In this document: piece by piece, positions 3,128 to 25,408 of the stretch | How the letters are laid out: each line of letters opens with the position of its first letter | Position numbering within the stretch: position 1 is the first letter of the stretch | Virus record (IMG/VR): IMGVR_UViG_3300049048_000052 | Coordinates: 187,781 to 251,780 of that record | Strand: one strand, 5' to 3' | DNA: 64,000 nucleotides | Notes under the pieces: generated by a model | Databases searched by the model: none | Told to the model about the DNA's origin: nothing | The model's input: the letters and a program-made list of their open reading frames with translations, nothing else | Position numbers and translations under genes: made by a program

Positions 3128-3799
3128 ATGAGAGACTTAGCAAGACAGATGCTATTGACTGCTCAGAAGTATGTCAATGTAGGTAAGAAGCCTCCTGGGT
3201 TTCATAGCTTTACCAATAAGTACTTAGAAGAGTATGAGAAAATCTTTAGGAATTGGAGAGAACGCACCTTCTTTCCTATGACGTTAGAGGATGTCCAGGC
3301 AGACCTACTGGCTTCATATGCTAGGGACTTTTTTGTCTATAGCTTCTCTTGGGCTATACCTTCTGATGAGGCTATAGACTTAATTGCTAGCTATGACAAC
3401 ATAATAGATGCTGGCGCCGGTACAGGTTACTGGGCTGGCCTATTAAGACAGCAGGGTTGTAAGGTGGAGGCTTGGGATAAGCAGCCTTATTTCAATGGCT
3501 ACTGTAACACTTCTTGGTCTTATGTAGAGAGGGTAGCTCCTGCGGAGGTCTTATATAGGTTAAGTAGTAGGTGCAATCACACCTTATTACTTGTATGGCC
3601 CCCAGTGAATTCTTTTGCATATAAAGCCGTTAAGGCCTTTAGTGGTAATAGGGTTATATATGTGGGGGAATGGTATGGCTGTACAGGGGATGCTGATTTT
3701 CATAATTATCTTGAGGACTACTTTGAGGTAGTTAATGTCTTAGAGATACCCCGTTGGCCCTGCATATTAGATCGTTTATACGTCTTGGAGAGAAAATAG
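3128..3799 (+). CDS. Class I SAM-dependent methyltransferase-like protein
   Basis: Motif I IIDAGAGTGYWA, then AWD, LLLVWPP and IYVGE. Confidence 0.8.
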   Translation: MRDLARQMLLTAQKYVNVGKKPPGFHSFTNKYLEEYEKIFRNWRERTFFPMTLEDVQADLLASYARDFFVYSFSWAIPSDEAIDLIASYDNIIDAGAGTGYWAGLLRQQGCKVEAWDKQPYFNGYCNTSWSYVERVAPAEVLYRLSSRCNHTLLLVWPPVNSFAYKAVKAFSGNRVIYVGEWYGCTGDADFHNYLEDYFEVVNVLEIPRWPCILDRLYVLERK

Positions 3800-3801
3800 C
3801 A

Positions 3802-4149
3802 TTGGAACAATTACTATGCCATCTAGTTGGCGATTATTTATTGCAAAACGACTGGATGGCTAGTAATAAGACTAAGGACATGTCAGTGGCTGCCATACAC
3901 GGGGCCACTTACTTCCTACCTTTCTTCCTCATTACTAACTCCTTTTGGGCCCTAATAGTTATACTGATTACTCATATAATTATTGATCATTACTCCCTAG
4001 CTAGGGAGTTCAATAAGTTAAAGAATGATTGTTGGACCTTTAATGGATTCCCCCTGGATAGACCTATATGGCTCACTACGTGGGTGATCATTATTATGGA
4101 TAACACTATGCACCTACTAATTAATTACTTTGCATTGAGGTATCTATGA
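3802..4149 (+). CDS. DUF3307-like membrane protein
   Basis: HLVGDYLLQ, IH, THIIIDH and DNTMH motifs; hydrophobic; TTG start at 3802 after GGAGAG preferred over 3754. Confidence 0.8.
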   Translation: MEQLLCHLVGDYLLQNDWMASNKTKDMSVAAIHGATYFLPFFLITNSFWALIVILITHIIIDHYSLAREFNKLKNDCWTFNGFPLDRPIWLTTWVIIIMDNTMHLLINYFALRYL

Positions 4150-4526
4150 GGGTATATCATGGTACAGATCAAGAGCTAACCCATATAAAGAAGGGTAGCT
4201 ATGTAACCCCCTTTCTACATGCAGCTAGACTATGGGGAGTTAAATGGAGCTATGAGCAGTTAATCTCAATAGATCCTAACAAAGTAGGAGAAACATTAAG
4301 ATTCCGTGCGCAGGCTATAGAATCCAGTCCCCTATTTGTGTATGTCAATGAGTTAGATGAGACTCAATTAGAGAAGACTACAACTAATCAGGATGTCCTC
4401 TATCCTTACATATATAAGACCAGGTTAGACCTATGGTTCAAAGAGGAAGAAAGATGGAGTGACTGGAAACTAGTTATTCCTTATTATGAGCGTCAGGATA
4501 GATATGGATACACACAATACCAATAG
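4146..4526 (+). CDS. Hypothetical protein, possible ADP-ribosyltransferase-like fold
   Basis: N-terminal YHGT followed by GSYVT..LHAA. Confidence 0.45.
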   Translation: MRVYHGTDQELTHIKKGSYVTPFLHAARLWGVKWSYEQLISIDPNKVGETLRFRAQAIESSPLFVYVNELDETQLEKTTTNQDVLYPYIYKTRLDLWFKEEERWSDWKLVIPYYERQDRYGYTQYQ

Positions 4527-5217
4527 GACTAGAAACATATTCTATGACACTGAGTTCATAGAAAGGGGCCCTGATTACCCCCTAACCCTTATCAGCATAG
4601 GTATGGTAGATGATGATGGTAGAACCTTCTATAGGGTCTCCTCTGAGTTTAGGGAGGAGGACTGTAATGATTGGGTTAAGGCTAACGTACTACCTTACCT
4701 GGGTCCTACTCACCCTTGTAGTAGAGCTGAGATAGCTCATGATCTAATGGAGTTCATAGGGGCTGATAAGCCTAGGTGGTATGGTTATTACTCTGCCTAT
4801 GACCATGTGCTCCTATGCCAACTCTTTGGTACTATGATAGAGCTTCCCAAGGGGTGGCCTATGTATACTAGGGACATTAAGCAAATGTTGGATTCCATCG
4901 GCAATCCAGAGGTGCCTAAGGACTTCAATGGAGTACTCCATAACGCTCTTGAGGATGCTCTATGGAATAAGAAGGTATACGAATGGCTATTAGGTCTAGG
5001 CTGTATAGAATCTAATGCTAGTCATAGGGATCGTATGGAACGCCTGTTATATGATATGAAGCTGGACTATAATAACCCCGAGCTAGTCCAATATTCCGGG
5101 TATGAAAATACGGATAATATAATCCTCTTAGGTAATGGAAGAGGCTACAGAGGTTTTACTGCAGAGTTCTTCTTTAATCCAGATGGATCCTTCGACCATC
5201 ATGGAATATGGGAATAG
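4486..5217 (+). CDS. DEDDh 3'-5' exo(ribo)nuclease (Rv2179c-like) with C-terminal extension
   Basis: FYDTEF, LISIGMV, SAYDHV and HNALEDA motifs. Confidence 0.88.
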   Translation: MSVRIDMDTHNTNRTRNIFYDTEFIERGPDYPLTLISIGMVDDDGRTFYRVSSEFREEDCNDWVKANVLPYLGPTHPCSRAEIAHDLMEFIGADKPRWYGYYSAYDHVLLCQLFGTMIELPKGWPMYTRDIKQMLDSIGNPEVPKDFNGVLHNALEDALWNKKVYEWLLGLGCIESNASHRDRMERLLYDMKLDYNNPELVQYSGYENTDNIILLGNGRGYRGFTAEFFFNPDGSFDHHGIWE

Positions 5218-5329: not shown

Positions 5330-6517
5330 ATGCTATCAAACAGATTTATGACCGAACCACTATTTATAAGTATACTGGGCCCTGCGGGGGTCGGTAAGTC
5401 GTTTACGGTTAATGAGAAGCTTAAAGAGGATCCATCCTACTGTATGAGGACCAGTACCACTGGTATATCAGCAGTGAACCTAGGAGGGGGTGCCATGACT
5501 ATTAACTCAGCCCTCAAATATTTTAATACTAAGCAGCTACTAATGAAGGTAGCCAATAAAGAAATAGATAGTATTCTGAAGAAGATCAGTGAGAGATTCA
5601 GGTACATAGTTATAGATGAGTGCTCTATGTTAGATGCCGCTCAGGTGGACCTTATATATACTGCTATATGTAGATTTAATGCTCAGAATAGAAAGAGGAA
5701 GTTAGGACTATATCTAACTGGTGATAGTGGTCAGTTGCCTGCTGTAAGTGGTAAGCCCTTCTTTGAGGCTAGATACTGGAATGCCTTTCATGTCTCATAT
5801 CTAACTGAGGTAAAGAGACAGAGTGATAAGGACTTTATTAAGGCATTACAACTAGTGAGAGCAGGTAGGCCCGAGGAGGCTGTAGACTGGTTTGAGGAGA
5901 ACATAGGATTCCATAGTTCTATTGATGAGGACTTTGAGGGCTCCACTTTCTTCTCTATGAATGCTGAGGTGGATACCTATAACTTTAGGAAGCTCACTGA
6001 GTTAGAGGGCGTATCCAAGAAGTATGTAGCCCTAATAGAGGGTACACCTATGGCTGTGTGGAAGGACATACCTAAGTATGTTGAACTAAAGAAGGGCGCC
6101 CTCATTACTATCCTTATCAATAACATTGAGCAGGGTTATGCCAATGGTGATATGGCCATCGTCCAGGAGACCTTTGACACCTGTATCCTAGTTAAGCTAC
6201 TGAGAACTAAGAGGCAGGTATACATCCATTATCATGGTGTAAATAATGTGCCCCTAGGTCAATATAAACCTGTAGGTTCTATCAGTTACTTACCAGTTAG
6301 ATTATCGTGGGCCAGCACTATTCATAAGAGTCAGTCTCTGAGTCTAGATGCAGTACAGATTAAGTTAGGTGGTGAGTTCCTAGAGAGATTAAGTGGTGGT
6401 TTATATACTGCTCTATCTAGAGTAAGGACAAAGGAAGGCCTACGCATAGTAGGTAATAGAGAATCGTTTATACAAAGTTGTTACGTTGATCCTAGATACA
6501 TTCCATATATTAAATAG
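5330..6517 (+). CDS. PIF1/RecD-like SF1B DNA helicase
   Basis: Walker A GPAGVGKS, IVIDECSM, GDSGQLP, KRQ, TIHKSQS and YTALSRV. Confidence 0.92.
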   Translation: MLSNRFMTEPLFISILGPAGVGKSFTVNEKLKEDPSYCMRTSTTGISAVNLGGGAMTINSALKYFNTKQLLMKVANKEIDSILKKISERFRYIVIDECSMLDAAQVDLIYTAICRFNAQNRKRKLGLYLTGDSGQLPAVSGKPFFEARYWNAFHVSYLTEVKRQSDKDFIKALQLVRAGRPEEAVDWFEENIGFHSSIDEDFEGSTFFSMNAEVDTYNFRKLTELEGVSKKYVALIEGTPMAVWKDIPKYVELKKGALITILINNIEQGYANGDMAIVQETFDTCILVKLLRTKRQVYIHYHGVNNVPLGQYKPVGSISYLPVRLSWASTIHKSQSLSLDAVQIKLGGEFLERLSGGLYTALSRVRTKEGLRIVGNRESFIQSCYVDPRYIPYIK

Positions 6518-6527: not shown

Positions 6528-7277
6528 ATGAGTAACTTACAGGACCTCTACAGGGAAATGGATAATAAAGTGAAGAATATGAATGAGCTCAAAACAGAGT
6601 TCTCTGAGCTTATGTTCTTTGTTGATTACCCAGAGATAGATACGGTTCACTTCTATTGTGAATATGAATACAACGATCAGGGTGGTACTTATCCTGTGTT
6701 TAGGATAAACACAGTAGAAATACATGATGAGCAAAGAAGGGCTCAGTTCCTCAACCGTATGGGTTATCCAGATACTGATATGGAGGAATGGTTAGAGGAG
6801 GAAGGCAGCTATGAGTTTGGTTATATATTAGGTAGATATATTGAAAGCCATGCGGATGAATATGGCGAGGGCTCCTTACATAATGATAGGGAAACTCTAG
6901 GAGAGCGTTGTCTAAGTCTGGCTCAGAGAATGAGTGAAGCTATAGGCTCATCCAATATCCCTATCGTATATATAGTAGAAGAAGTCATAGTTAACTATGA
7001 TGATTCCTACTATAGATTAGCAGAGGGTCATCAGGCTGACTCTGTATTCCTAGATAAGAAAGCAGCAGAGAAGAAAGCAGAGCAATGTGCCCTCTATATC
7101 CTTAAGGAATATGGTGATGACATAGAGTACATTGAGGATCATATCACCTGGCCTAGTGACTATATGTACCTAGGAGCTGATAAGCTTGTACAGGATATAT
7201 TAGATGGTACTTTAGGTATTGATAGAGTGGGATATAGCTCCCTTGCTAAAGTGAGGGAAATAAAAATAGAAGGTTAA
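6528..7277 (+). CDS. Acidic hypothetical protein; N-terminal half belongs to paralog family C
   Basis: FFVDYPEI...YNDQGG motif shared with ORFs at 7983, 8387 and 8817. Confidence 0.8.
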   Translation: MSNLQDLYREMDNKVKNMNELKTEFSELMFFVDYPEIDTVHFYCEYEYNDQGGTYPVFRINTVEIHDEQRRAQFLNRMGYPDTDMEEWLEEEGSYEFGYILGRYIESHADEYGEGSLHNDRETLGERCLSLAQRMSEAIGSSNIPIVYIVEEVIVNYDDSYYRLAEGHQADSVFLDKKAAEKKAEQCALYILKEYGDDIEYIEDHITWPSDYMYLGADKLVQDILDGTLGIDRVGYSSLAKVREIKIEG

Positions 7278-7278
7278 T

Positions 7279-7986
7279 ATGAAAGGTTTATCTATTACAG
7301 CCATCGGTCGGCGTCCCATAGAGGAATGTGTAAATATCTACTATGAGTTGATCGATAAGCTAGGAGTAGAGTACCTTCAGTTAGCAGTTGGGTCTAAGTG
7401 TAATGTGGAGTATTTAGATGGCCTAGATACTCCCTTTACTCTGCATGATAGCTGTCTATACGAGGGGGACTCTAGGTTATTCATTAATCCGTTAGAAGAT
7501 ACTAACTATGATAGGTATAAGGACTTCATAGAGAAGCACCAGGTTAGTTATATGGGTATACATCCTCCATTAAAGAAGGACTGTACTCAGCGTGAGTTAA
7601 GAGAAGGCCTTCAGTATATGTCTAAGTACTTAGGTATACCTGTGGCCCTAGAGATAATGCCTAGTCCTGAGTACTGGATGTCTGAGGATAATATGGTACC
7701 TGGTGTCCCTATCCTCCTGGATATTAGTCATATAAATCTATGGACTGAGGGTAATCTTAGTAGGGCCGAGAATGTCTCCTTATCCCTATTAGAGAGATAC
7801 CAAGTACTAGAGATACATCTCTCACATAACAGAGGCAGGGCTGATTCTCATGATATGATTCCGAGGTCCATCTGGTTTAACCAATACTTAGAACAGTGGG
7901 ACGATGAGTATCGTCTTGTAACCTATGAGTCTGTACCTATTGATTATAAGGAATACGAAAGGTTAGATAAGAGGAGAAATAAATGA
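7279..7986 (+). CDS. TIM-barrel metalloenzyme, endonuclease IV / xylose isomerase-like superfamily
   Basis: Ordered ligand motifs TLH, GIHP, ALE, LLDISH, EIHLS, DSH and TYE. Confidence 0.75.
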   Translation: MKGLSITAIGRRPIEECVNIYYELIDKLGVEYLQLAVGSKCNVEYLDGLDTPFTLHDSCLYEGDSRLFINPLEDTNYDRYKDFIEKHQVSYMGIHPPLKKDCTQRELREGLQYMSKYLGIPVALEIMPSPEYWMSEDNMVPGVPILLDISHINLWTEGNLSRAENVSLSLLERYQVLEIHLSHNRGRADSHDMIPRSIWFNQYLEQWDDEYRLVTYESVPIDYKEYERLDKRRNK

Positions 7987-8390
7987 CATTAAACATAGAT
8001 GACTTAGTCCTTAAACTTAAGAGGACCCATAATCTGCTGACCACTTATAAATTGTTTCAGAAGTACCCTGAGATTAAACAGGTTAAAGTAAGGTTCTCTA
8101 ACCAATATAACGATTGGGGTGGTTATGATGAGGTTATTGAACTAAAAGGTGTGGGACTCTTTGAGGATAAAGCAGAAGAGTTCACAGCCTCTATGAAGAG
8201 GTTTGCTAGCCCAGACCTTAATTTAGAAGAGATCATAGAATGTGGTTCAGGATACCCGCAGCAACTTCATTATATTGAGGATGAGGAAGTCACTTATACT
8301 AATCCAGGCCCCGAGGTTATAGAGAGTAATCTACTCAGTATTGAGGCTATGCTCTGGGGCATCAATAAGTTAAATGAAGTACAGGAATGA
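7983..8390 (+). CDS. Hypothetical protein (paralog family C)
   Basis: LKRTHNLL, KYPEI, YNDWGG, GYP and YTNPGP. Confidence 0.85.
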   Translation: MTLNIDDLVLKLKRTHNLLTTYKLFQKYPEIKQVKVRFSNQYNDWGGYDEVIELKGVGLFEDKAEEFTASMKRFASPDLNLEEIIECGSGYPQQLHYIEDEEVTYTNPGPEVIESNLLSIEAMLWGINKLNEVQE

Positions 8391-8824
8391 GTAGCGCTAA
8401 TATAGGTGTTCTAGTAGAAAAACTAAAGATAACCCATAACTTGCTAGAGACCCTAAAGTTCTTTCATAAATATCCTCAACTTGATTATGTGGTGGTTAAA
8501 CACTCTAATAACTATAACGATGAGGGTGGGTTCTATGACTCCGTGTCGCTGTATGACTTTGAGATATTAGAGGGACAGGAGCAATTCCTATTGGAAGCCT
8601 TTAACTTCAATGTATGTAACCCTGATCATATATGTGCCTTTGATATAGAGGATACCACTGGATATCCCAACACACTATGGTTTACCTATGATGGGGATGA
8701 GGTTACCTACCACAACCCTGGACCTGATAAGGCAGCCGCTTACATTGATCATACAGAGACTACTATTAAGGGCATCAATGCCTTATTTGAACTAAACGAT
8801 ATGTGTAAGGGTAAGTATGAGTGA
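8387..8824 (+). CDS. Hypothetical protein (paralog family C)
   Basis: LKITHNLL, KYPQL, YNDEGG, GYP and YHNPGP. Confidence 0.85.
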   Translation: MSSANIGVLVEKLKITHNLLETLKFFHKYPQLDYVVVKHSNNYNDEGGFYDSVSLYDFEILEGQEQFLLEAFNFNVCNPDHICAFDIEDTTGYPNTLWFTYDGDEVTYHNPGPDKAAAYIDHTETTIKGINALFELNDMCKGKYE

Positions 8825-9254
8825 AAGTCTGGCAACCGGCATTATAAAAGAGCTGAAAAAGTTACACAATGCATTGAGAACTCTAGAGTTCTTTAAGGAA
8901 TACCCTCAAGTAGAGAGCCTTCAGGTTGAGTGCTGTAGGAGCTATGATGACCATGAGTATTATGATGATATGCAACTGGTCAAGATAGAACTTATAGAGG
9001 GTAGAGAGGAAGAGTTCTGTGACCTAATACAGGTAGATAGGACCTACTGGAAGGAGGAGGGCTTTGGGTTTGAAGTAGAACCCCAAACTAACTACCCTCA
9101 TGAGTATCTCATGTATATGCACGATGGTTATATAGTCGATTATGTTAATCCAGGGCCTGCCTTAATAGATTGTAATATAAGATCTATTGAGGGAAGACTT
9201 AGGGCGATAGCAGGTTTATTACATATGGACTTAGAGGAATATGACTATAATTAA
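8817..9254 (+). CDS. Hypothetical protein (paralog family C)
   Basis: LKKLHNAL, EYPQV, YDD, NYP and YVNPGP. Confidence 0.85.
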   Translation: MSESLATGIIKELKKLHNALRTLEFFKEYPQVESLQVECCRSYDDHEYYDDMQLVKIELIEGREEEFCDLIQVDRTYWKEEGFGFEVEPQTNYPHEYLMYMHDGYIVDYVNPGPALIDCNIRSIEGRLRAIAGLLHMDLEEYDYN

Positions 9255-10371
9255 AGAAAGTCCTACATACATCAGTAAAGCTAAGAAAGGTAATGATAAG
9301 TTCTGGAGGATAGCTGTACTTGAGAAAGGCACATCTTATTACACCAGACAGGAATACTGGCAGACCACTAATGATGGCACGGATAGTGTCCATCAGTTTA
9401 GTGAACCTAAGCTCATTACACCTAAGAACGTAGGTAAGAAGAACGAGACTAGCCCCCTAGCACAAGCCCTATCTGAGATGGAGTCAACTATACTCCGATA
9501 TAAGGATAAGGGTTATCATCTAGAGGGTGAAGACGCGGCTACCCTCATACTACCTATGCTTGCTATGGAATATAGTAAACGTAAGGCAGTCAATAAGGTT
9601 ACATGGCCTATGTATGGTCAACCCAAGTTAGACGGGGCCCGTTGCTTATACAGTAATAAGACTGGATTCTATAGTAGGATGGGTAAACCTTTCCTAGCTG
9701 AGGTTACAGCTCATATTCACAGACCAAGTATCAAGGATAGCTACATACTAGATGGAGAGCTTATACTACTTAGGCCCTATACTTTCCAGGATACAATGAA
9801 GGCCATCAAGAAGTTTAGGGAGGACCTAAGTCCTCAGCTAGTATATGTAACCTACGATGTTATAGATACTGAGAATCTAGATATGCCCTTCATTGAGAGG
9901 CTAGACTTATTAGATCATATCCATTCTATCTTTCTATCTAGAAGTATGGTGACCTGTAAGACTGAGACTCTAGTCGACGAGGAGGATATGCTTAAGTATC
10001 ATACAGAGATTATCCGATTAGGCTTCGAGGGCACAATGCTTAGGGATCCTAACTCTACCTATAGTATTAATCATAGGAGCGCTGGGCTACTCAAGTATAA
10101 GGACTTCCTTGATGATGACTTTGAGATCACTAATGTAGTCTCAGGTGTGGCTAAGTTCAAGGACTGCGGCATATTCGAATGTAGAACCAAGGATGGTCAG
10201 ATCTTCTCTGTAACACCTCAGGGCACCCTTGAGGAGAAGCAGGAGTACCTCAAGAAGTCCAAGGAGTTAATTGGTCAGTTACTTAAAGTTAAATATCAGA
10301 ATTTATCAGAGGATGGTATACCTAGATTCCCAGTGGGTATAGGTATACGAGATAAAAATGTAGAGGGCTAA
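9241..10371 (+). CDS. ATP-dependent DNA ligase
   Basis: QPKLDGAR, LDGE, EGTMLR, LLKYK and PRFP motifs. Confidence 0.95.
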   Translation: MTIIKESPTYISKAKKGNDKFWRIAVLEKGTSYYTRQEYWQTTNDGTDSVHQFSEPKLITPKNVGKKNETSPLAQALSEMESTILRYKDKGYHLEGEDAATLILPMLAMEYSKRKAVNKVTWPMYGQPKLDGARCLYSNKTGFYSRMGKPFLAEVTAHIHRPSIKDSYILDGELILLRPYTFQDTMKAIKKFREDLSPQLVYVTYDVIDTENLDMPFIERLDLLDHIHSIFLSRSMVTCKTETLVDEEDMLKYHTEIIRLGFEGTMLRDPNSTYSINHRSAGLLKYKDFLDDDFEITNVVSGVAKFKDCGIFECRTKDGQIFSVTPQGTLEEKQEYLKKSKELIGQLLKVKYQNLSEDGIPRFPVGIGIRDKNVEG

Positions 10372-11664
10372 ATGTTAGATGATATTACTATTCAAAGGCT
10401 AGAGAGATTAAAGAACCACATAGGCCTGTCTAGTATACATCCTGACTTCAATACTAGAGGGGCGTCTAATTGCCCCTTTTGTAATAAGAAGGGTAAGGGT
10501 TATATAGTAGATGACCAGTTCTTCAAGTGCTATAGCAGTAGGTGTGCTACCCAAGGCGACCTCGTATCTATCTATAGGAAACTACACGGACTAGAGGGTA
10601 AAGGATCATTCTTTACAGCCATATCTGAGTTAGAGAAGCTAGCAGGACTATCTGATCTTACTGAGACTAATGATGAGAGATCTGAACTCTTAGGGGAGGT
10701 AGTTGACACCTATGCCTCTATCCTATGGACATCCGAGGGTAGAGAAGCACTCAAGTATCTAAAGAGTAGAGGCTTTGATGATATTAGCCTTAATATGTAC
10801 CAAGTAGGATATGCACCACAAGGTTCAACCCTACTCAAGTATGGCTTTGATATTAATAAGCTAAGTCAGCATCAATTATATGATAGGCGCCATGAGAAGG
10901 AATACTTCTCTAATCGTATTACCTTCCCCATTAGGGATATGCAAGGTAAGTATGTTCATATAGTTGGTCGTTGGTTAGGTGATGTACCCAAGGATGAGAA
11001 TGGGGATGATAAATGGCTAAGGTATAAGGACAGTAAGGGTCCAATTACTAGTAAGAACTACTTCGCCTTTGAGCATCTAATCCCTGCTTTTAGTCTTAGG
11101 AACAAACCATACCTTGTATTAACTGAAGGGTTCCCTGATGCACTAACCTTAAATCAGGCAGGCATTCCTGCTATAGCTATCCTAGGACTTGAAGGCCTTC
11201 TTAAACAGTATCAAAAGTTTAAGGATCTAGAGGAACTAATAGTCGTAGCTGATAATGATTACTTTGCTGAGGATCATCCATTATATCCGCTTGAATATAA
11301 GAGTTGGAGAAGGTTGATACCACAACTAGTAGAGCTGCAGATCATGCTACCTCAGGTCAAGATCAGTTGGCTTATGGTACCTGAGGGCGGCACCACTAGT
11401 AGAGGTATTAGCTATAGCTGTAAAGATGTTAATGATTGGTATAACAGATCTGGTATGAGCAGTAGAGATCTACAGGCTCATATCATAGCTAATAAACAAG
11501 AGTTAGTACCTACCCTCATAGAGAAGTGGGGCCCAGATCTTAGTAGACACTTATCCTTAATTAGGTTAATAACTGCTACGGGCTCTGATGTTAGGCAACT
11601 AGAGAGATATATACCTGTGGGCTGGAGTCCTATAACGTACGCATCTCAAGTCTTCTCTTCATGA
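10372..11664 (+). CDS. dnaG: DnaG-type DNA primase
   Basis: Zn finger CPFC...CYSSRC, YLKSRGF, RITFPI, TOPRIM EGFPD and ADND. Confidence 0.92.
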   Translation: MLDDITIQRLERLKNHIGLSSIHPDFNTRGASNCPFCNKKGKGYIVDDQFFKCYSSRCATQGDLVSIYRKLHGLEGKGSFFTAISELEKLAGLSDLTETNDERSELLGEVVDTYASILWTSEGREALKYLKSRGFDDISLNMYQVGYAPQGSTLLKYGFDINKLSQHQLYDRRHEKEYFSNRITFPIRDMQGKYVHIVGRWLGDVPKDENGDDKWLRYKDSKGPITSKNYFAFEHLIPAFSLRNKPYLVLTEGFPDALTLNQAGIPAIAILGLEGLLKQYQKFKDLEELIVVADNDYFAEDHPLYPLEYKSWRRLIPQLVELQIMLPQVKISWLMVPEGGTTSRGISYSCKDVNDWYNRSGMSSRDLQAHIIANKQELVPTLIEKWGPDLSRHLSLIRLITATGSDVRQLERYIPVGWSPITYASQVFSS

Positions 11665-15832: not shown

Positions 15833-16526
15833 TACAGAAACTCTTATTAATAGTCTATTGTCCTTTAGGGATAGGTTCTCAGAACAACTGCTTAAGTCTA
15901 AGTTAGCAGGTGTTGATGTATGGTCCGGACTCATGGAGGAGTTGGATGGTCTTATAGATGTATTTGATAAGCCTATAGAAATTGATCCTGCATATCTTAA
16001 GAAGTCCTCCATTATCGATAGGTTAGGCCTGGGCTTCCAGGTTATAAAGCTATATGAAGAGGACTATAAGGAGATACAGATAGGTGAGATTCTTACTAAT
16101 CAGACAGGCTTAACTATCACTACTGCTGAGGTTAAGAAGTGGCTTGAGATTAATAAGAATGATCTAACTATTAGTAAACCTGTGGCCCTTAAAGGTTCAG
16201 TCTTTGATACTCAGGCTAGGATGCAAGAGATCTTTGAGGATTTATATATCCGTATAGATACTATTAGAGCTAAGAGTGAGGATGCCTATAAGGGTAATAA
16301 AGTAAGTAAGGATGAGGTTGAACTAGAGTATTTAAAAGAAGTAAGACAATTAGTTAAGGACGCCGCTAATATAGTATCAGCAGTGTCCACCATGAATAGG
16401 GTTAATGACTTCCAAAAGTTAGTCATAGAAGTAATAGGTCAAGTAAGTCCGGCCGCCCAACAACAACTATTAAGAAAGCTGAATGAGCATAGAGTAATTA
16501 TGGGGAGTTTAATACCTCCTAGTTAG
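15825..16526 (+). CDS. Helical hypothetical protein
   Basis: Long ORF coupled to the HTH gene; last gene of the + arm. Confidence 0.75.
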   Translation: MTNTETLINSLLSFRDRFSEQLLKSKLAGVDVWSGLMEELDGLIDVFDKPIEIDPAYLKKSSIIDRLGLGFQVIKLYEEDYKEIQIGEILTNQTGLTITTAEVKKWLEINKNDLTISKPVALKGSVFDTQARMQEIFEDLYIRIDTIRAKSEDAYKGNKVSKDEVELEYLKEVRQLVKDAANIVSAVSTMNRVNDFQKLVIEVIGQVSPAAQQQLLRKLNEHRVIMGSLIPPS

Positions 16527-19500
16527 TTCATCATTAGATGGGCCGTAGAAGGATCAAAAGCCTTATTAATTAAGTATTGTTTAGCTGTTGACTCTAAATC
16601 ATTGTCAACAGCTTTTTGTTTGCCTACACTCACGTCCTCTTCCTTCTTATTGACTTTTAGACCCTGTTTAATGATGGGTTTATTACCAGTTTGTACCTGA
16701 GCATTAAAGTTAGTGCTATCTTCAGATCTAGATGTAACTGATTGTTTGGGTATACTTATACTAAACTCTTGATTCCTTCTAGCGGTTGTGGATGTTATTA
16801 AGGCATTAACCTCAGCTAAATTACTAATGATACCGGCATCCTCAAGTTGCCTCATAGACTTAACATCCTTAACTAATATCTTGATATTAATATCGGATGT
16901 ATTCTTAAGAACCTGAACAGCCTGGGCTGCTAGGGTCTCCTCGAATCTCCTCTCAGAGGCCTGTATATCCTTATAGTTATTAGCAGACTTAGCCATAGTA
17001 CGCCACATATAACGACCTACTATGGATTGGTTATAGTACTGAGCCCTTATCTCAAATTCCCTGGATATAGTACTATCAGCCATAAAGTTCATAGGTCTGA
17101 TGTTACCAAGGTTACGTGACCATAGATCCTTATATGGGCTGTCACTAACTGCTTGACCGTATAAACTTGGACTAGTAAATAAAGCAGCAGTTTGTTTCCC
17201 AGTAGGATCTGCAGCTCCTTGCAACAATGTCTTATACTCTGCATCTATAACCTGCTGTGCTGTCCCTATCATAAAGGGTGAACCTGGATGGGAGAAGCCA
17301 TATCTAGGTTGCTCGGTTATGCTATTAGGGGAGGAGGCTATCATTGCACCAATAGGCACACTACCTATCTTCCATGCGCTAACTACTCTACTAATGGTAG
17401 TGGCAACATTAGCTATTGCATCTGGGAACATTAGGCCCAAGACTCCACCTACTCCAGCAGCAGCAAGACCTATAATACCCACCGCAGCCCAACCACCTAC
17501 AGCACCAAAAGCTAATAGTCCAACTCCAAATGCAGCCCCCGCTAGTCCGGTACCTACCGCCATAGTGGCCCCTGCCTTACCCCTATCTCCTGCTATCATA
17601 TGACTGACTGAGGGTAAGGCCTCACCAAAGAGGTAACCTACTCCATCGCTTACAGCATAGTAGCTATCACCTATAAACTTAGTGAAGCTCTTATAACCTG
17701 ACGTGTTGCTAGCCTTATCCATAGCAGGCGCTACAAACTTCTTCCATAGTGCTATACCCCCCGCTGTAATAGCTGCTGCGCCTAGTAATCCGAGTATTAC
17801 TAATCCCACAGGAGGAATTGTTACACCCGTGGCAGCTGCTGTAGCACCGGTACCCGCTGCAGCACCACCTATAGTCAAACCCCCCGCCGCAAGTATGCCT
17901 GCCCACCAGGTACTTATTGCGGTCATAGCCTTACCTATTCCTAATGTAGCTAGGTAGCCCAGACCTATAGATGCAGTTACATTAGTAACCGTACTACCTG
18001 CTTCGTTTCTTATCAAAGCTAATTGGGATCTACTAATGTTAGGGTTATCTTGGGCGGCAGCTAAACGGCTAAAGCTTGAGAATATATCAAAGGCTTGGAA
18101 CGTATCGGTTATCAAACCTATTACGTTGACCAGTTCAAATAGGCCACCACCCCAACCAGCCTTAGCCTTTATAGACTTACTAAGTGTTCCTCCCCTAACT
18201 ATCTCAGCAGGATCAGATACTTTTACTGTTGTTGAGGTAGATATGGTACCTTTATTAGCCTTAGGTCTAACTGTAGATGACATAACGTTACCTGCAAATT
18301 TGATAACGTTCTCTATCTCCCCTTGTAGTGCTTGAGAATAATCAATGGAAACTACTCTACCCAGACCTCCTATATTATTTATTAGGTTACCAAAGGCAGG
18401 GGACTTAGTTACTTCCTGTAAGACCTTCTCCGTAAGTACTTTTATACTTGTGGTCTGGTCAGCATTCATAGAGTGGATGAGTTGTTGCTCTATCCTGTCA
18501 GACCAACCAAAGAAGCCCCCTCCTCTTACTTCCCTTTGGAGTACATCCTCTACAGTCTTTTCTAGAGACTTCTTAAGTTCCTCCTTAGCACCAACTAACT
18601 GAGGCATAGCCTTCTCTAGATCCTGTGGGGTATCTAATCTAAGATTAGGATCACTAAGATCTAGGTCAGGATTAAGTAGGGCTACTAATCTTACTTTCTT
18701 ACCATTTATATCTACTTGGATATCTGTAATAGCCTCAAAGTAATTATCTACTAACTTGTTAAGTTGTTCTCTATACTCTACTCTAAGCTTATCTATATAT
18801 TCAGATCTAGAGTCTCCTATAGAGGGTGCCTGCTCAGCTAACTTCTGATTAACCGTAGTCCTCATATTATCCAGGAAGCTCTTATCCGCATCAGCACCAT
18901 ACATCTTACCCATATAAGAGTTCTGTATGGCTACCTCCATCTGAGCCATAGCATCATTGATAGCCTTAATATTAGATAGATCCCTTGTTGACCGACCAGT
19001 CAGTAAGGTGTTATTCATCTGGAAGTATCTGGAACCCTTATGCACAATTAGCTTTGGTCTACCACCTTCCTCCATAACAGATCCATATAAACCTCTCTGT
19101 TGTCTAACTGTAAAGGAGTAGGGTGAGTCTGGGGCTCCTCTTGTGCCTCCCTTGGTATACCAAGGCTCATTCAGTAGTCTGTCAACTTCCTGTTGAAGTT
19201 GATTAAATTGCCTCCTGGCATTCATAGTGGTTAACATAGACATTCCCATAGTACCAACAGCGGCACCTAGGAATACGTAGAGTGGATACTGTAGGGGTCC
19301 TATACTAGAGGCTACCATAGAGAGTCCATAGGCGAATCCTGAAGGTATAAAGGATCCTTGACCGTTATCATCGCTAGGGACAAATGGACTATACATATCA
19401 GCCCATTGGCTAGGATCTGATACATAGGTAGGCAGGCCTCTTAATCTACCTGTCTTAGCATCCTTCTCAAAGAACTTAGCGCTAACAATCTTAATGTCTC

Positions 19501-22500
19501 TAGTAACATTACCAAAACTATCATTAAATATCTTATATAGATTCTCTCTATTACCATTCATCATATCCATAATGATGCCGACGGCGTCCTTATGGTTCAT
19601 AGCCCTTATTAGCATGTCACTTACCAAGGACTGACTAGGCTGGAAACTCATATGGGCCGTCATCTTACTTCTGTAATCTATAGCCCCGGCCACTAAGTCG
19701 TCACCACCTATAAGACCTAATACAGACTCATCTACCTTACTAATCTTCCTTCTCTCCTTGAGAGGCTGAAGATGAGCGGTAACGCTCATAAGATTAACGG
19801 CTGCCTTCCTAAGATCCTTCTCAGCTAACTTGGATAGACCGCTCTCAGAGTTGGCAGCATTAGATACTGCCTTTAGGGCTTTTATAGTATTGATAGCTAG
19901 ATCATTATTACCCGCGAATGATTCCTTGAATAGGAAAGCAGCAGACATAGAATAGACTGCGGTAGATATATCCTGACCGGCGGATTGCATCTGAATATAC
20001 ATACTATTTCTAGTACCATACTCACCAGTCCTGAATGTCACACCAAATAGGTTGTAGAAGTTAAGGAAGGCATTGGGTTCGTCTAGGATAAATAAACTAC
20101 TTATATCCTTCCATATCTTGTTGGCACCTGAGTTTCTATCAGGTCCCTTAACTAGTTTCCTGTACTTAACTGGAGAAGCAGATAGACCGAATGAGCTGCC
20201 AGGTACCATAGGGGTGGGTAAGGGGCCCATACGTTCTATACTTCTATCCTGACCGGTTACTAATCTGAATGTGTCTGCTAATATAGAACCTAGATATTGT
20301 AAGGGTTTAATACCCGTATTGAAGCCAGTCTCTAGACCATCGAATATATTATTTATGGCCTCCCTATTCTGACCGCCACCAGTTAATAGGGCTGCAGTGG
20401 TTGCCGTGCCTAATCCTAACCAAGCTAGACTCCTAATGGCCCTCCTACTTAGTAATGTAGGTCTTACCCTTCTGTTAACAGCGCCAGCCTTTCTAGCTAA
20501 TGAGGATAGACCCTCTCCCACATTAGGATCGTTATGATCACCCCTTATAATCTTTATGAGGGCATCCTTATCTCCATCAGTGGCAAGATTAAATACTTGC
20601 TCTCCACTGTCTACCTTCATGGCATTGGTCTTAGCCATCTGTTGAGATATCCTATGGATATCCGCATCAGCCTTGGCATCAGGACTATTGGCGACCTCAT
20701 GCATTCTAGATGCCATATCTATAATATATGCACTATCCTGAGCCAGTGCTCTTTCATGTAGCTTCAACCACCAATGTCTAAGAGCCTGGACTCCTTTTGG
20801 TCCCGCAGGGGTATTCTTAGTCTTCTCTAGTATATTGGCATATGCATCTAGGGTATCTGCATTTGACATACCCATCTTACCCATGCCATAGGTGATGGAT
20901 GTCATAGTGGCAGCATACATACTCATGACGCTGAGTCTATAAACTATATCCTCCCTACCATCATACTTGTCCATATCCCTAGAATAGCCAAAGTTAGGAT
21001 CTGTAATGGCATAGGCTATACCGGCAAATAGACCAAAGACCTTGGCTCTACCACTATGTCTCAAGTTATATATAGGCTTACCCATTCTGTTCCAGAGAAA
21101 GCTACCAGTAGATGCTACGGTCCTCTGTAAATGAGTGGGCATCCTGTTGTACATACCTCTAGCAGATAGACGGGCTAGTCTAGCTGCACTAGGTATAAGA
21201 TTCTTAGATAGTTCGAATACTTCTGGGCCTAATATGGTCAGGGCTGGTCCTACAGTAAAGGTTCCTAATAGGCCGCCCATAGTTATGTCAGCAGGATCCT
21301 TACGACCTAATAAGGCTGCGCCAGTACTTCCTAGTATGGAACCTACGTACATGCCCACCATACCTTTGAGGGCCAAAGACTTAAATAACTGGGCCTGTGT
21401 TGGGGCTTTAAAGACGGGAAGGCTCTTATTCATAGCATTAGCTATACCTCCGTAAACCCCCAGGTCAGCAACCGCCATACCCCTAACTATACGATAGGCT
21501 GTTGCCGGTATAGCCTCAGCAGCCCTAGTCCCATACCTTATAATCCTATTGGCTGTCTCATAGGATTTAGTAATGGAAGTCATGCTTATCATGCCAGGTT
21601 TGTAGCTACCAGATGGTCCTAGCTTGCTGTCTATAAGATTACTCAACATCTGGCCCACCGCTACAGTTAGGGTAGCAGTGCCTGTCAGTAGACCTACACT
21701 CTGTATGAAATCTATGGTGTTTGACTGTTCATTATATGCAACACCTAAGCCAAACATACCCCCACCCCTATATATCTTTATAGGTAGTTGGGTACTAATG
21801 GACACACCAAATATAGGGGCGGATTGGATACCTACAGAATAATAACTAGTTCCACCTTTGCTATTATCAGGCGCTCCATTAGGTAAAGTAGGACGACCCT
21901 TAATAGTCTCTGCTAAGAAGAACTGTATAAATGGTAGGGGTGACTGTTTAGCTATAACTTGTACAGTTGGGCCCATTCTATCTTGGTCTAATGCAGGTAG
22001 TACCTTTGATAGTTCACCGCCGTAGAATGCCGCCATTAACTCCAGGTTAGAGGGTCTTTGACCACTATCTAGTCTCTCCTTAACTAACCTCTTGAAGTTA
22101 GCTATCTGGCTAATGGCGCTAGCCATAGCAGGATCTACCCTATGCATTCCAGTACCAACATCGGTCAATCTAATACCGATTGCATTGGTTATAAATCCTA
22201 AGGCCCCTCCAGCTAGAGCACCTAGTATTATACCTCTACCACTCTTGGTTAGAGACCCTAGACCTGCAGCCCCTGCTGCACCAAATATAAGAGGATCAAG
22301 ACTACCCCTGCCACCCTCCTGGAAGAGACTACTGCTAGTAGATGTCCAGTTCCTAGAGAGCTGCAATAAACCTGCAGTAGCACTACGAGCCCCTTGGGTG
22401 GCTAACATACCTACACCAAAGACAATAGCAGTATTCCTGTTGATATCACCCATCATACGTATGACAGGTTTCTCATAGGTTATAGCCCCGTTAATAGCTA

Positions 22501-25408
22501 CCTTACGGAATAACTGGAAACTCCTAGTTACCTTATCTCCGTCCATCATGGCTAAATGGAATACGCCTGCTACACCTTTGGCGGCACCTTGCATATCCTC
22601 ATCACTTATCAGCTTAAAGCCTATATTACCTTTAGTAACCTTAAGCAGGGCCTCGACAGCCTCACCCTTAATAGAATAGGGAACAGTCACTGGTCTCCTC
22701 ATACCATGGGCAACATGTCTAGCCAGCATGAGCATACCCCCAGCATAGGCAGAGCTAACTAAAACGTTAGATGCCATCTCACTAGGAAATATGCTTATAG
22801 TCGGTAAGAAACGACCTGCCGTGAACTCAGGTGCTAGTCCATACTGACCTGTTGTGACTGAGGCTGCTATCTGGGTAAATATAGAGGCTCCACCTGATGA
22901 CTGGAATAGCTCATTACCTACTATGGCTATATCTAGAGCGAGGATGGCATACATAGCTATCTTGGCCTTTGATCTGGATAGACTAGGTTCGGAACCTATT
23001 CCAGGCCTTAGCAGATCCCCTGCAGTACTTGCGGTCATCTGCATTATCTTAGACTCTGCTATCCTTTCAGATAACTTAGATACAGTGTCTACCTCATAGC
23101 CATGTCCCTTAAGGAAATCCTCATATTCAATCATGGCATCGAATAGTTGGGTAGGTAATGCATCTAGCTTGAACGCTTTAACTACTCTAACGTCTCCGTT
23201 GTCACTCCATTCTAGGTTAGTGGCCCCTCCACTTATTAGGGATTCCTCTGCAGCTCTAAATGCAGATGTTACCCTATTAAGTTTCTTAGCGACTGCAGCC
23301 TGAGTATTAACCCTAGCAGTTCCCTCTACAGCCGCCATTTGAATGGCCCTAAATAGACCTTTAGCTTTTCTATGTATAGCAGAGCCTACATTATCGCTAC
23401 CTGTGCCCGGCATGACCTCAGTCTTAGAGAACATACCACCTAATCCATTGGCACCCAAGAACACCTTCTGCATGTAGTCAGTTGCCTGGGCAAAAGATAG
23501 TATGTTGCCAACCATTAAAGGCTTAGCCCCTGATTCGTCTATACCTCCAAATATCCTCCAATTAAGGGGATTAAGTGGTACTGCATCAAGGACACCCTGT
23601 AATGCTCTAGCTACATTCTGCTGTCTCTCAGCACCTACGTTAGTAAGCATGATGACAGCCTCATCCTTACCTATAGTCTTAGCTAGCTTGGGATCCTGCA
23701 GAGCATCGTATAAGTCCTGAAGATTACCGAACTTATTGTTATGTACCTGTAGACCTACAGGTCTACCAACCTCTGCTATAAGTTTATCTATAGCATCAAC
23801 AAATGTTCTGGAATCCTCACTACCTGCCCTATAAGGATTTATGTGCTCTACTAGGAACGGTTTGACTATGGTACTGAGTAATATCTCAGCCCTCTTTCTA
23901 AAGAAGGCTGAGTTAGCATGATAGGGAGTTAAACTAAATGAACTTATATCATAGAATTCTTTATTACTACCTTGAAGGTCTATTAGTCTTTTAACTACAG
24001 AGGCCTTGAGGGATGTACCATCCTTTTCACCCCAATGTTCTAGACCTAACCCCAGGTTAGCTGCGGCCCTTCTTCTAAGTGCTTCTGGCATAGTAGGACC
24101 ATCACTAGCAAATGCCAGGTCAAGAAGATCCTGTGTCTGGTTCTTGAAGCTCTCCCCTAATATAAGGTTTAAGGGTTCCCCCACTGCCAGGTAGAGGGAT
24201 ACTGCTGCTGCAGAGCTTAATGCTAAGTTAGTACTAAAGCCTAATAAGCTCTCAAAGAATCCAGCCTTAGGTTCTTTATATGAAGCACCCCTAGACATAT
24301 CCTCTGATAACTTAGCAGAGTCACTCCTAGGATCTGTGTAATAAAGATAGGTCTTATCTAGTACTCTACCTATAGCGCCTGTGAGGGATGGTAGGAATCC
24401 TAGTTCATCTTTATACAATCTACCTAAGCCCACAGGCATAAACCAGTGTTCATTAAGCCACATACCCAGGCCGGGTGTTGTAAGCTCAACGTCAAACCTA
24501 CGAACAGCGTAGGGTGTTTGTTGTTGGACTAGATCTGTCTTCCTAGCAATAGCTATTCTATATAGGGCGCCTAGGACTGCAGTATTATCATTATTAATAA
24601 TCTCAGTAGGCATACCCCCCTGTCTCATCATATTGTTATGAAGAGCTACAGCATAGAAGTAAGAAGGGCCCATCTGTGAAGGGACTGATAGACCCCCTGT
24701 TACATTGGTGTCATCAAATAAGGTTACTAATTGAGGGTTATCTACGCCGTACTTCTGGGCTAGGTGAGTAGCATTGTAATAGGCTACCTGCCTCAGGTCT
24801 TCTCTACGAGATGTACCTAATAACTGTAGAACACCGTTCTTATATTTAACAGGATTAACATAGTTACGATTTGAGTATATGCCCACACCGTTGACTATAT
24901 TGGAGACGGCAATACCTTCCATCTCCTCTGTCATTACAGTAGGATCATAGAAAGGATCTCCCTTAAAATAAGGATGAGCATAACCTCTCTTAAGTAGTTC
25001 CTGGGATAGATCTCTACCATCCTCAGTCATTACCTTGGCAATAGGACGGCCATTGTTATCTAACCCTCTAATATAGAGGGTTACTTCCTTGCCCTCTACA
25101 AGAGACTGAGTATAATCTGTTGCTGCGGTCCCGTATGGTTGGGATCTTAGCTTATTAATCCTGCTTAATAGGTTACCATTATTCCAGAATTGAGAACCGT
25201 GAGCCGTCTCAGGTGTGTCTGCACCTGAGAGTCTAACGACTCCCTTAATATCAGGATCAGCAACGCTGAAGGTGTCGCCGTCTATTACTCTAGTAACCCT
25301 TGTTTTAACAATACGAGAAGTTCCAGTGGTGAATGAATAATTACCATTACCACTGGAACTGTCATTATTTAACAGGTTATCAAACTGTGAAGATATAACT
25401 TGAGGCAT
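16523..25408 (-). CDS. Giant 2961-aa virion protein: N-terminal thermonuclease (SNase) domain plus many Gly/Ala-rich hydrophobic helices (ejection or tape-measure-like)
   Basis: VTRVIDGDTF, VRLSGADTPET, DNNGR and ELLKRGYA; more than 12 hydrophobic glycine-zipper-like segments. Confidence 0.85.
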   Translation of the reverse strand: MPQVISSQFDNLLNNDSSSGNGNYSFTTGTSRIVKTRVTRVIDGDTFSVADPDIKGVVRLSGADTPETAHGSQFWNNGNLLSRINKLRSQPYGTAATDYTQSLVEGKEVTLYIRGLDNNGRPIAKVMTEDGRDLSQELLKRGYAHPYFKGDPFYDPTVMTEEMEGIAVSNIVNGVGIYSNRNYVNPVKYKNGVLQLLGTSRREDLRQVAYYNATHLAQKYGVDNPQLVTLFDDTNVTGGLSVPSQMGPSYFYAVALHNNMMRQGGMPTEIINNDNTAVLGALYRIAIARKTDLVQQQTPYAVRRFDVELTTPGLGMWLNEHWFMPVGLGRLYKDELGFLPSLTGAIGRVLDKTYLYYTDPRSDSAKLSEDMSRGASYKEPKAGFFESLLGFSTNLALSSAAAVSLYLAVGEPLNLILGESFKNQTQDLLDLAFASDGPTMPEALRRRAAANLGLGLEHWGEKDGTSLKASVVKRLIDLQGSNKEFYDISSFSLTPYHANSAFFRKRAEILLSTIVKPFLVEHINPYRAGSEDSRTFVDAIDKLIAEVGRPVGLQVHNNKFGNLQDLYDALQDPKLAKTIGKDEAVIMLTNVGAERQQNVARALQGVLDAVPLNPLNWRIFGGIDESGAKPLMVGNILSFAQATDYMQKVFLGANGLGGMFSKTEVMPGTGSDNVGSAIHRKAKGLFRAIQMAAVEGTARVNTQAAVAKKLNRVTSAFRAAEESLISGGATNLEWSDNGDVRVVKAFKLDALPTQLFDAMIEYEDFLKGHGYEVDTVSKLSERIAESKIMQMTASTAGDLLRPGIGSEPSLSRSKAKIAMYAILALDIAIVGNELFQSSGGASIFTQIAASVTTGQYGLAPEFTAGRFLPTISIFPSEMASNVLVSSAYAGGMLMLARHVAHGMRRPVTVPYSIKGEAVEALLKVTKGNIGFKLISDEDMQGAAKGVAGVFHLAMMDGDKVTRSFQLFRKVAINGAITYEKPVIRMMGDINRNTAIVFGVGMLATQGARSATAGLLQLSRNWTSTSSSLFQEGGRGSLDPLIFGAAGAAGLGSLTKSGRGIILGALAGGALGFITNAIGIRLTDVGTGMHRVDPAMASAISQIANFKRLVKERLDSGQRPSNLELMAAFYGGELSKVLPALDQDRMGPTVQVIAKQSPLPFIQFFLAETIKGRPTLPNGAPDNSKGGTSYYSVGIQSAPIFGVSISTQLPIKIYRGGGMFGLGVAYNEQSNTIDFIQSVGLLTGTATLTVAVGQMLSNLIDSKLGPSGSYKPGMISMTSITKSYETANRIIRYGTRAAEAIPATAYRIVRGMAVADLGVYGGIANAMNKSLPVFKAPTQAQLFKSLALKGMVGMYVGSILGSTGAALLGRKDPADITMGGLLGTFTVGPALTILGPEVFELSKNLIPSAARLARLSARGMYNRMPTHLQRTVASTGSFLWNRMGKPIYNLRHSGRAKVFGLFAGIAYAITDPNFGYSRDMDKYDGREDIVYRLSVMSMYAATMTSITYGMGKMGMSNADTLDAYANILEKTKNTPAGPKGVQALRHWWLKLHERALAQDSAYIIDMASRMHEVANSPDAKADADIHRISQQMAKTNAMKVDSGEQVFNLATDGDKDALIKIIRGDHNDPNVGEGLSSLARKAGAVNRRVRPTLLSRRAIRSLAWLGLGTATTAALLTGGGQNREAINNIFDGLETGFNTGIKPLQYLGSILADTFRLVTGQDRSIERMGPLPTPMVPGSSFGLSASPVKYRKLVKGPDRNSGANKIWKDISSLFILDEPNAFLNFYNLFGVTFRTGEYGTRNSMYIQMQSAGQDISTAVYSMSAAFLFKESFAGNNDLAINTIKALKAVSNAANSESGLSKLAEKDLRKAAVNLMSVTAHLQPLKERRKISKVDESVLGLIGGDDLVAGAIDYRSKMTAHMSFQPSQSLVSDMLIRAMNHKDAVGIIMDMMNGNRENLYKIFNDSFGNVTRDIKIVSAKFFEKDAKTGRLRGLPTYVSDPSQWADMYSPFVPSDDNGQGSFIPSGFAYGLSMVASSIGPLQYPLYVFLGAAVGTMGMSMLTTMNARRQFNQLQQEVDRLLNEPWYTKGGTRGAPDSPYSFTVRQQRGLYGSVMEEGGRPKLIVHKGSRYFQMNNTLLTGRSTRDLSNIKAINDAMAQMEVAIQNSYMGKMYGADADKSFLDNMRTTVNQKLAEQAPSIGDSRSEYIDKLRVEYREQLNKLVDNYFEAITDIQVDINGKKVRLVALLNPDLDLSDPNLRLDTPQDLEKAMPQLVGAKEELKKSLEKTVEDVLQREVRGGGFFGWSDRIEQQLIHSMNADQTTSIKVLTEKVLQEVTKSPAFGNLINNIGGLGRVVSIDYSQALQGEIENVIKFAGNVMSSTVRPKANKGTISTSTTVKVSDPAEIVRGGTLSKSIKAKAGWGGGLFELVNVIGLITDTFQAFDIFSSFSRLAAAQDNPNISRSQLALIRNEAGSTVTNVTASIGLGYLATLGIGKAMTAISTWWAGILAAGGLTIGGAAAGTGATAAATGVTIPPVGLVILGLLGAAAITAGGIALWKKFVAPAMDKASNTSGYKSFTKFIGDSYYAVSDGVGYLFGEALPSVSHMIAGDRGKAGATMAVGTGLAGAAFGVGLLAFGAVGGWAAVGIIGLAAAGVGGVLGLMFPDAIANVATTISRVVSAWKIGSVPIGAMIASSPNSITEQPRYGFSHPGSPFMIGTAQQVIDAEYKTLLQGAADPTGKQTAALFTSPSLYGQAVSDSPYKDLWSRNLGNIRPMNFMADSTISREFEIRAQYYNQSIVGRYMWRTMAKSANNYKDIQASERRFEETLAAQAVQVLKNTSDINIKILVKDVKSMRQLEDAGIISNLAEVNALITSTTARRNQEFSISIPKQSVTSRSEDSTNFNAQVQTGNKPIIKQGLKVNKKEEDVSVGKQKAVDNDLESTAKQYLINKAFDPSTAHLMMN

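Follow-up and report, generated by a model that had tools for sequence, protein, structure and literature searches.

The final 64,000 nucleotides (hereafter the window) of IMG/VR virus record IMGVR_UViG_3300049048_000052, positions 187,781 to 251,780, contain an array of five genes (window positions 6528-9254) that encodes a metallo-TIM-barrel enzyme together with cognate acidic proteins, a system that is nearest to MNIO systems. The record, of 251,780 bp, is rated complete by CheckV, and its size (~251.8 kb) is that of a jumbo phage. The enzyme gene (7279-7986, + strand; 235 residues, isoelectric point (pI) 5.0) is preceded by that of protein A (6528-7277, +; 249 residues, pI 4.4) and followed by those of C1 (7983-8390, +; 135 residues, pI 4.6), C2 (8387-8824, +; 145 residues, pI 4.5) and C3 (8817-9254, +; 145 residues, pI 4.5), so that all five products are acidic (pI 4.4-5.0). 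C1-C3 are paralogs built on one domain, here called C, and protein A joins a C domain (residues 1 to ~130) to a second module, M2 (residues ~145-249). The enzyme and both of the partner families described below lie outside the Pfam, NCBIfam, PHROG and PADLOC models, the solved structures that can be matched by sequence, and the literature that we found. The enzyme and the acidic proteins very likely work as one unit, because the C family adjoins the enzyme in every readable context, in cyanobacteria as well as in phages.

The enzyme and its metal site

The AlphaFold2 (AF2) model of the 7279-7986 protein has a mean predicted local distance difference test score (pLDDT) of 95.1 and eight strands, and structure search places it in the xylose-isomerase-like TIM-barrel fold; Foldseek and VIA searches with the model left all subfamilies tied and singled out none. 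A preliminary description of this DNA had listed candidates for nine EndoIV-type metal ligands in order. All nine (H56, H95, E125, D148, H151, H180, D189, H191, E217) are present, without variation in 49 of 49 aligned homologs, which bears out a TIM barrel with an EndoIV/MNIO-type nine-residue metal site. Their order (H, H, E, D-x-x-H, H, D-x-H, E) matches the Endonuclease IV (Nfo) set, and to our knowledge such a nine-ligand set is otherwise confined to EndoIV and MNIO. The absence of a HAPY motif, also remarked on in that description, is no useful discriminator: the context of the first His reads L-H-D-S-C-L-Y in the phage enzyme and P-H69-D-S-Y-L-I in E. coli Nfo itself.

As judged from its homologs, the enzyme belongs to an undescribed, rare and almost purely cyanobacterial family. 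A word search recovered 81 homologs (39-85% identity), none with a Pfam domain and all of the source-named ones cyanobacterial, and scanning a single genome for each species gave 47 loci, of which all but two, in metagenome bins labelled otherwise, are cyanobacterial. Fold and family-level sequence signals are both present for the xylose isomerase-like TIM barrels (AP_endonuc_2, at clan level): Pfam AP_endonuc_2 scores the phage enzyme at 16 bits (cut-off 31.1) and gives sub-threshold matches in 19 of the 49 family members. The phage enzyme went unmatched in the scan with Pfam MNIO (PF05114), the family found no match in NCBIfam (including TIGR00587), and a sequence-profile search of the PDB returned none even at E 10. 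Our literature search found no paper on this family or on the partner families.

A cousin family of cyanobacterial nine-ligand TIM proteins (264-273 residues) is related to the enzyme family by hhalign (probability 98.5%, E 1.7e-15) and reaches 62 bits on AP_endonuc_2, above the Pfam cut-off; by these scores it links the enzyme family to Pfam AP_endonuc_2. Cousin genes are preceded by one or two unannotated proteins of ~240 residues with an A/G-Y-D-D-E motif (L118-L120; G076, G037, G025), and one locus (L118) has two tandem paralogs of the cousin partner.

Degraded copies of the enzyme gene also occur. It is split, frameshifted or fragmentary at cyanobacterial loci L038, L048, L050, L052, L053 and L055-L057, and a 43-codon remnant with two stops lies just downstream of an intact copy (G001:C2:4700985-4701113). 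From such copies, the module appears to decay readily.

Relation to MNIO and Endonuclease IV

We built comparison profiles from genomes for 17 cyanobacterial MNIOs and for 19 Nfo sequences, the latter comprising E. coli Nfo and 18 from the phylum sample around a metagenome-assembled genome labelled Crocinitomicaceae; the 19-sequence profile replaced a single-sequence Nfo comparison that was uninformative. Against the MNIO profile the enzyme family aligned over 165 columns at E 7.4e-4 (probability 26%, both profiles having a low effective number of sequences), with E125, D148..H151, H180 and D189-x-H191 kept in register. Adding three cousin sequences improved this to E 7.9e-5 (probability 61%, again with profiles of low effective sequence number). 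Against the Nfo profile there was no meaningful alignment (E 0.18-0.23, probability 0.3%).

At the fifth ligand the relationship turns the other way. His151 is found in all 49 family members and His in 19/19 Nfo sequences, whereas 17/17 cyanobacterial MNIOs have Asn, the residue described as highly conserved in MbnB (N166; PMC9060507). The residue types otherwise agree with the MNIO set (H, H, E, D, N, H, D, H, E) at eight of nine ligands. Thus, by profile the family appears somewhat nearer to MNIO, and in two local features it is EndoIV-like. We assign it to neither, because the defining features of each were looked for and not found; as read from its sequences, it is a separate branch with a full trinuclear-type ligand set.

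Among characterized families, MNIO/DUF692 (MbnBC-MbnA, TglHI-TglA, BufBC-bufferins, HvfBC-HvfA) is the best profile-profile relative. These systems share the TIM barrel with ligands H, H, E, D-x-x-X, H, D-x-H, E and always encode cognate proteins alongside, and multi-copy neighbor genes and protein-sized substrates are known for them (PMC12452194). Unlike MNIOs, the enzyme family falls below the PF05114 cut-off, is ~30-40 residues shorter and is present in phages, and its partners are unrelated to DUF2063/MbnC and have neither a Cys motif nor a signal peptide.

Partner proteins

The paralogy of C1-C3 is, on their pairwise scores, unambiguous and far beyond chance (BLASTP E 7e-27 and 40% identity for C1 and C2; E 3e-20 and 30% for C2 and C3). 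Protein A shares with them only its N-terminal ~50-110 residues (pairwise E 4e-5; E 2.6e-10 for the C1-C3 hidden Markov model (HMM) against its C domain). The motif F..YP.(I/L/V)...Y(N/D)D, given in the preliminary description as common to four paralogs, is borne out in all four proteins by F31, Y34, P35, Y48 and D50 (A numbering), which are invariant, and the HN.L and NPGP motifs are, as it said, limited to C1-C3. What needs amending is the count of four: there are three close paralogs, and protein A is a two-module C + M2 protein, orthologous to cyanobacterial partners of a separate architecture. AF2 models A (pLDDT 80.5) with a long beta-hairpin and then a helix in either module, and puts YND (48-50) and YDD (157-159) at the turns of the hairpins. 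Both C and M2 are predicted to fold (pLDDT 80-94).

A word search with C2 found no relative besides C2 itself. Because word search and family scans left the C family open, 1.84 billion representative proteins were searched with a profile built on nine C domains (E up to 1e-3). This profile matched just 54 proteins, among them C1 (P0087, E 2.4e-42), C2 (P0082, E 3.2e-44) and C3 (P0086, E 5.9e-44). Conservation is centered on the motif, at Y43 and D45 of the domain. The domain occurs alone, with M2, behind DUF6878, and once joined to a fragment of the enzyme. The complete C + M2 architecture of protein A, with the M2 motif Y-A-V-x-E-P-x-x-x-Y-(D/N)-D-E-Y-Y, recurs in P0093, P0096, P0097, P0100, P0121, P0128 and P0127. 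DUF6878 heads some C proteins (P0089, P0090, L031:1565-2494, L037:4138-5004) at 27-33 bits (cut-off 24.3), with a G-E-G-D-S-G motif. The fused protein (P0102, 277 residues) has the C domain in frame with a TIM barrel from which approximately the first 65 residues, and with them the first His ligand, are missing. A deletion probably produced this protein, which is a further sign of the adjacency of C and enzyme genes.

Immediately upstream of the cyanobacterial enzyme genes, and on their strand, lie genes without annotation, and an HMM map of all loci resolved two partner types beside the enzyme gene. The first, HEAT-type partner (type 1), found at the majority of loci, has an N-terminal HEAT/GUN4_N-like repeat followed by a core. 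The best conserved part of this core is P-G-D-x-I-Y-S-V-Y-x-S-x-x-x-Y-x-D-x-x-Y, then an A-E-x-x-A helix, and conservation peaks at V110, S113 and D119. The M2 module of protein A aligns to this core (hhalign E 1.5e-4). Homology between C and M2 was considered and rejected, as the hhalign match was a tail artefact only; the two have the motif in common and no detectable ancestry. The second partner type is the C domain, encoded upstream of the enzyme at L031 and L035 (two C genes each), L037, L041 and L043.

Type-1 copies number one to five per enzyme, as tandem genes or internal duplications: five at L022, four at L019, three at L024, and doubled proteins of 618-629 residues at L004, L007 and L012. 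The N-terminal module of type-1 partners (V-L-G-G-Q-x-P-P-P ... L-G-G-I-E-G-L and the HEAT/GUN4_N-like repeat) is widespread in cyanobacteria, where it heads many proteins of 270-700 residues that have no M2 core (e.g. G067, G061, G124, G010). In Dulcicalothrix desertica PCC 7102, a third type-1 gene lies downstream of the enzyme gene (L033:5824-6660), which gives the phage layout of partners on both sides a cyanobacterial parallel.

Across all partner types the Asp of the Y-(D/N)-D-like motif is kept. Apart from the DUF6878 domains, the partners matched nothing in Pfam, NCBIfam or PHROG, and no fold match was found for them.

Linkage and distribution

Thirty-seven loci in the tree set have an intact enzyme gene. 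At 28 of these, HEAT-type partners (1-5 tandem copies or repeat units) lie upstream on the same strand; at eight, C genes are adjacent, upstream or downstream (five cyanobacterial-type and three phage-like loci); and one (L034) has a partner with M2 only. The converse look-up, from the C profile, found the enzyme next door wherever there was enough flanking sequence (L058, L059/L060, L061, L062/L063), two contigs being too short to tell and two further look-ups yielding no DNA. The preliminary description had proposed a functional tie between the acidic paralogs and the TIM barrel that independent occurrence in other genomes would undermine. With an HMM of the C family in hand, no independent occurrence was found, and C genes abut an enzyme homolog in every readable context. 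We found no third conserved gene accompanying the pair; neighbors differ at every locus.

Loci L058 and L061 overlap at 99.8% DNA identity and so belong to a single phage, whose helicase and enzyme share 72% and 53% identity with the Dda-like helicase of the window (5330-6517) and the window enzyme, respectively. The gene order is helicase, C + M2 protein (P0127), enzyme, C protein with an NPGP-type tail (P0118) and an unrelated open reading frame (ORF). By this shared order, the lineage has kept both the module and its place, and the three downstream paralogs of the window are a local expansion. Extra small ORFs in related phage-like contigs are neither C- nor M2-like. In the maximum-likelihood tree, the enzymes of the window, L058 and L061 group together (100/97), with the type-1-associated enzymes as their sister group, and the cyanobacterial C-associated enzymes and the phage-like L062 enzyme form the other main clade. 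Partner type changes five times on the tree, against a mean of 11.6 for shuffled labels, a clustering that relatedness alone can give. L062/L063 (GCA_013565675.1, GCA_013565735.1) is a phage-like 26-kb contig with RNase T, dCMP deaminase and DUF8296 genes, in which the enzyme gene is followed by a 102-residue ORF and a C protein gene; the assemblies that hold it are made up of very many contigs. In Leptolyngbya sp. NIES-2104 (L010:1-4505), ATP-grasp-like, sulfatase and radical-SAM genes and a second partner copy lie directly upstream of the pair; these genes may make up a larger tailoring cluster with it or be no more than neighbors. Going by genome records, other cultivable carriers of the pair include Crocosphaera chwakensis CCY0110, Calothrix parasitica NIES-267 and Hyella patelloides LEGE 07179.

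Among 121 genomes sampled evenly from the phylum, a sample too sparse for a formal co-occurrence statistic, the full-length enzyme was found in the seed genome only, as was a full-length type-1 partner with the M2 core; the other matches to that partner were to the widespread N-terminal repeat, and no C domain was found. The array is an accessory module, not a housekeeping repair gene.

What the module may do

We favor, as plausible though somewhat short of an even chance, the reading that the enzyme acts on its cognate proteins as substrates, with a logic like that of MNIOs, and that the set has been expanded in this phage. The five genes would be the phage copy of a conserved two-part module whose other carriers are a minority of the cyanobacteria. 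One part would be the compact TIM barrel with its predicted three-metal center, the other one or more co-encoded acidic proteins that all keep the Asp of a Y-(D/N)-D-like motif, placed at the hairpin tip in the model of A. The enzyme would act on or with its partners through the Asp-bearing hairpin. Probably the tip of this hairpin reaches into the metal site and undergoes post-translational modification, by oxidative chemistry as in MNIO/DUF692, the nearest characterized relatives by profile. Protein A and C1-C3 would then be a diversified set of substrates, comparable to the multi-copy precursors of RiPPs (peptides made on the ribosome and then modified post-translationally) encoded beside a single tailoring enzyme, although, unlike RiPP precursors, they are predicted to be folded proteins of 135-250 residues. 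The phage would express this set together with its replication genes. We prefer substrates as the role of the partners because they vary in copy number, because their conservation is concentrated at a single exposed motif, and because the pair has no third conserved gene with it. MNIO modification of whole proteins, besides that of peptides, is reported in PMC12452194.

Several observations weigh against this interpretation. The Pfam MNIO model touches just four of the 49 family members, below its cut-off (best E 0.0039), and the Asn ligand of MNIOs is replaced by His, as in EndoIV. The Asp of the partner motif alone is universal, because the Tyr is Phe in some type-1 partners. Where PMC12452194 describes MNIO substrates, most have Cys motifs and the partner proteins are DUF2063/MbnC-like; no conserved Cys was found in the partners studied here, and no DUF2063/MbnC-type partner was found beside the enzyme. 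We know of no MNIO chemistry on an internal Asp. A DNA enzyme, too, would fit this place beside a ligase gene in the replication block. Complex prediction for the enzyme and C2 with their own alignments gave scores of 0.14 and 0.02, under the mark of 0.32, and speaks neither for nor against binding.

Should the enzyme modify its neighbors, the reach of MNIO-type chemistry would grow in four respects: a new enzyme family whose third-metal ligand differs, substrates that are folded cytoplasmic proteins lacking cysteine motifs, cyanobacteria outside the set of their canonical MNIOs, and phages. The array would then provide a clean, small system, of one 235-residue enzyme and four candidate substrates of 135-250 residues, for relating EndoIV- and MNIO-type trinuclear sites. 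More tentatively, and with the balance tilted against it, we suggest a new class of trinuclear-metal TIM-barrel enzymes, intermediate between EndoIV and MNIO and shared by cyanobacteria and jumbo phages, that modifies the Asp-bearing Y-(D/N)-D hairpin of folded acidic proteins encoded in tandem arrays, such that several modified proteins would be present in early infection.

The strongest rival is that the enzyme is an EndoIV-like phosphodiesterase or nuclease that acts on DNA (in repair, in processing or as a toxin), and that it is inhibited or regulated by the acidic hairpin proteins, which would resemble antitoxins, immunity proteins or DNA mimics and plug the metal site with the Asp/Tyr hairpin. 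This we hold to be unlikely but a serious contender. The nine ligands are of the same types as in Nfo and similarly spaced, the fifth belongs to a D-x-x-H as in every Nfo sequence compared and unlike MNIO, and local motifs are Nfo-like (H-D-S at the first His, and H-x-x-x-N vs H-L-N-D in Nfo). In the phage the genes sit among DNA-metabolism genes, between the Dda-like helicase and an ATP-dependent DNA ligase followed by a primase-like ORF. The rare, patchy, fast-evolving and phage-borne distribution is that of conflict systems, and, in the manner of toxin-antitoxin pairs, the upstream acidic partner gene closely abuts the enzyme gene or overlaps it. Canonical nfo (TIGR00587) scores over the cut-off in none of the 121 sampled genomes, where only sub-threshold relatives of ~283 residues were found, in ~2-Mb genomes.

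However, "EndoIV-like" as a statement of family membership, as in the preliminary description, does not stand, given the lack of Nfo profile similarity and of any NCBIfam match. The enzyme is itself acidic (pI 5.0, net charge -13) and compact, with ~50 residues fewer than Nfo, and its family is rare and accessory, not housekeeping, and in obligate linkage with acidic partners, which Nfo does not have. Up to five inhibitors arrayed for one stand-alone enzyme would be without clear precedent. PADLOC returned no match for the enzyme or the partners, and a SUKH immunity-protein lead was rejected, SMI1_KNR4 appearing in just 1 of 17 partners at E 0.063. Should the enzyme nevertheless be a nuclease that acidic hairpin inhibitors keep in check, the two would make a new toxin/inhibitor-like pair on an EndoIV-type site. 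Either way, three unannotated families (the enzyme, the C domain and the M2/HEAT-type partner) gain a testable context.

It is rather improbable, in our estimate, that the acidic proteins are accessory specificity or activation subunits, in the role of MbnC or TglI, that present a third-party peptide, protein or small molecule, with the paralogs as alternative specificities. According to PMC9060507 and PMC12452194, characterized MNIOs do need a barrel-capping partner. Both modules, C and M2, have the predicted structure of folded domains, and the HEAT/ARM-like N-termini of the main partner type are typical protein-binding modules. But a third conserved gene is missing from the loci, whose neighbors vary, and MNIO partners are normally single-copy, while here they are multiplied up to five-fold.

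Less probable again is a small-molecule enzyme, such as a sugar or sugar-phosphate isomerase, epimerase or dehydratase, the kind that most AP_endonuc_2 members are, with neighbors that are scaffolds or functionally unrelated. The cousin family that passes the AP_endonuc_2 cut-off points in this direction. As far as is known, the sugar enzymes of AP_endonuc_2 have a mono- or binuclear E/D/H/E site, though, and here five further His/Asp ligands are invariant, giving a trinuclear-type set; no sugar-metabolism genes neighbor the loci, and the strict linkage to C and M2 would be left unexplained.

Finally, it is very improbable that C1-C3 are stand-alone anti-defence DNA mimics that lie beside the enzyme by chance, an idea also raised in the preliminary description: they are small and acidic (pI 4.5-4.6), multiplied in the phage and in an early/replication block, but support specific to mimicry is limited to this acidity, the C domain is chromosomal in cyanobacteria and always beside the enzyme there, no C domain was found without the enzyme where context is readable, and no defence or anti-defence model or known mimic fold was matched.

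Genomic setting

The array sits within the replication-gene block of the phage, as part of a co-directional run of DNA-metabolism genes. The five genes are separated by overlaps of 4-14 nt or gaps of 1-10 nt; the start of C1 overlaps the stop of the enzyme gene, and the stop of C3 overlaps the start of the ligase gene (9241). The array region has fewer promoter-like sites than shuffled sequence does, and between the array genes no terminator was found that convinces. With this tight packing, the array looks like one translationally coupled string. No further copies of the array genes were found in the whole phage genome.

Upstream of the helicase is an Rv2179c-like 3'-5' exonuclease (4486-5217; 'Rnase H' in PHROG), and a DUF3307 membrane protein (phrog_6676) is encoded at 3754-4149, just upstream of the helicase region. 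Downstream of C3, the ATP-dependent DNA ligase gene (9241-10371) is followed by a 430-residue ORF (10372-11664) that is primase-like by its sequence, a label with no family scan behind it.

A search of a phage collection found no close relative, the ligase being ≤35% identical to any entry. Scans of phage databases and IMG/VR with the array DNA, the TIM barrel and C2 gave no match, and none of the five array proteins matched PHROGs. From the range of homologs alone we infer a cyanobacterial host; psbA was not found in the phage. Further along the window, an ORF of 2961 residues (16523-25408, - strand) opens a long minus-strand run of large ORFs (up to 1472, 1188 and 1112 residues), presumably virion or structural genes.

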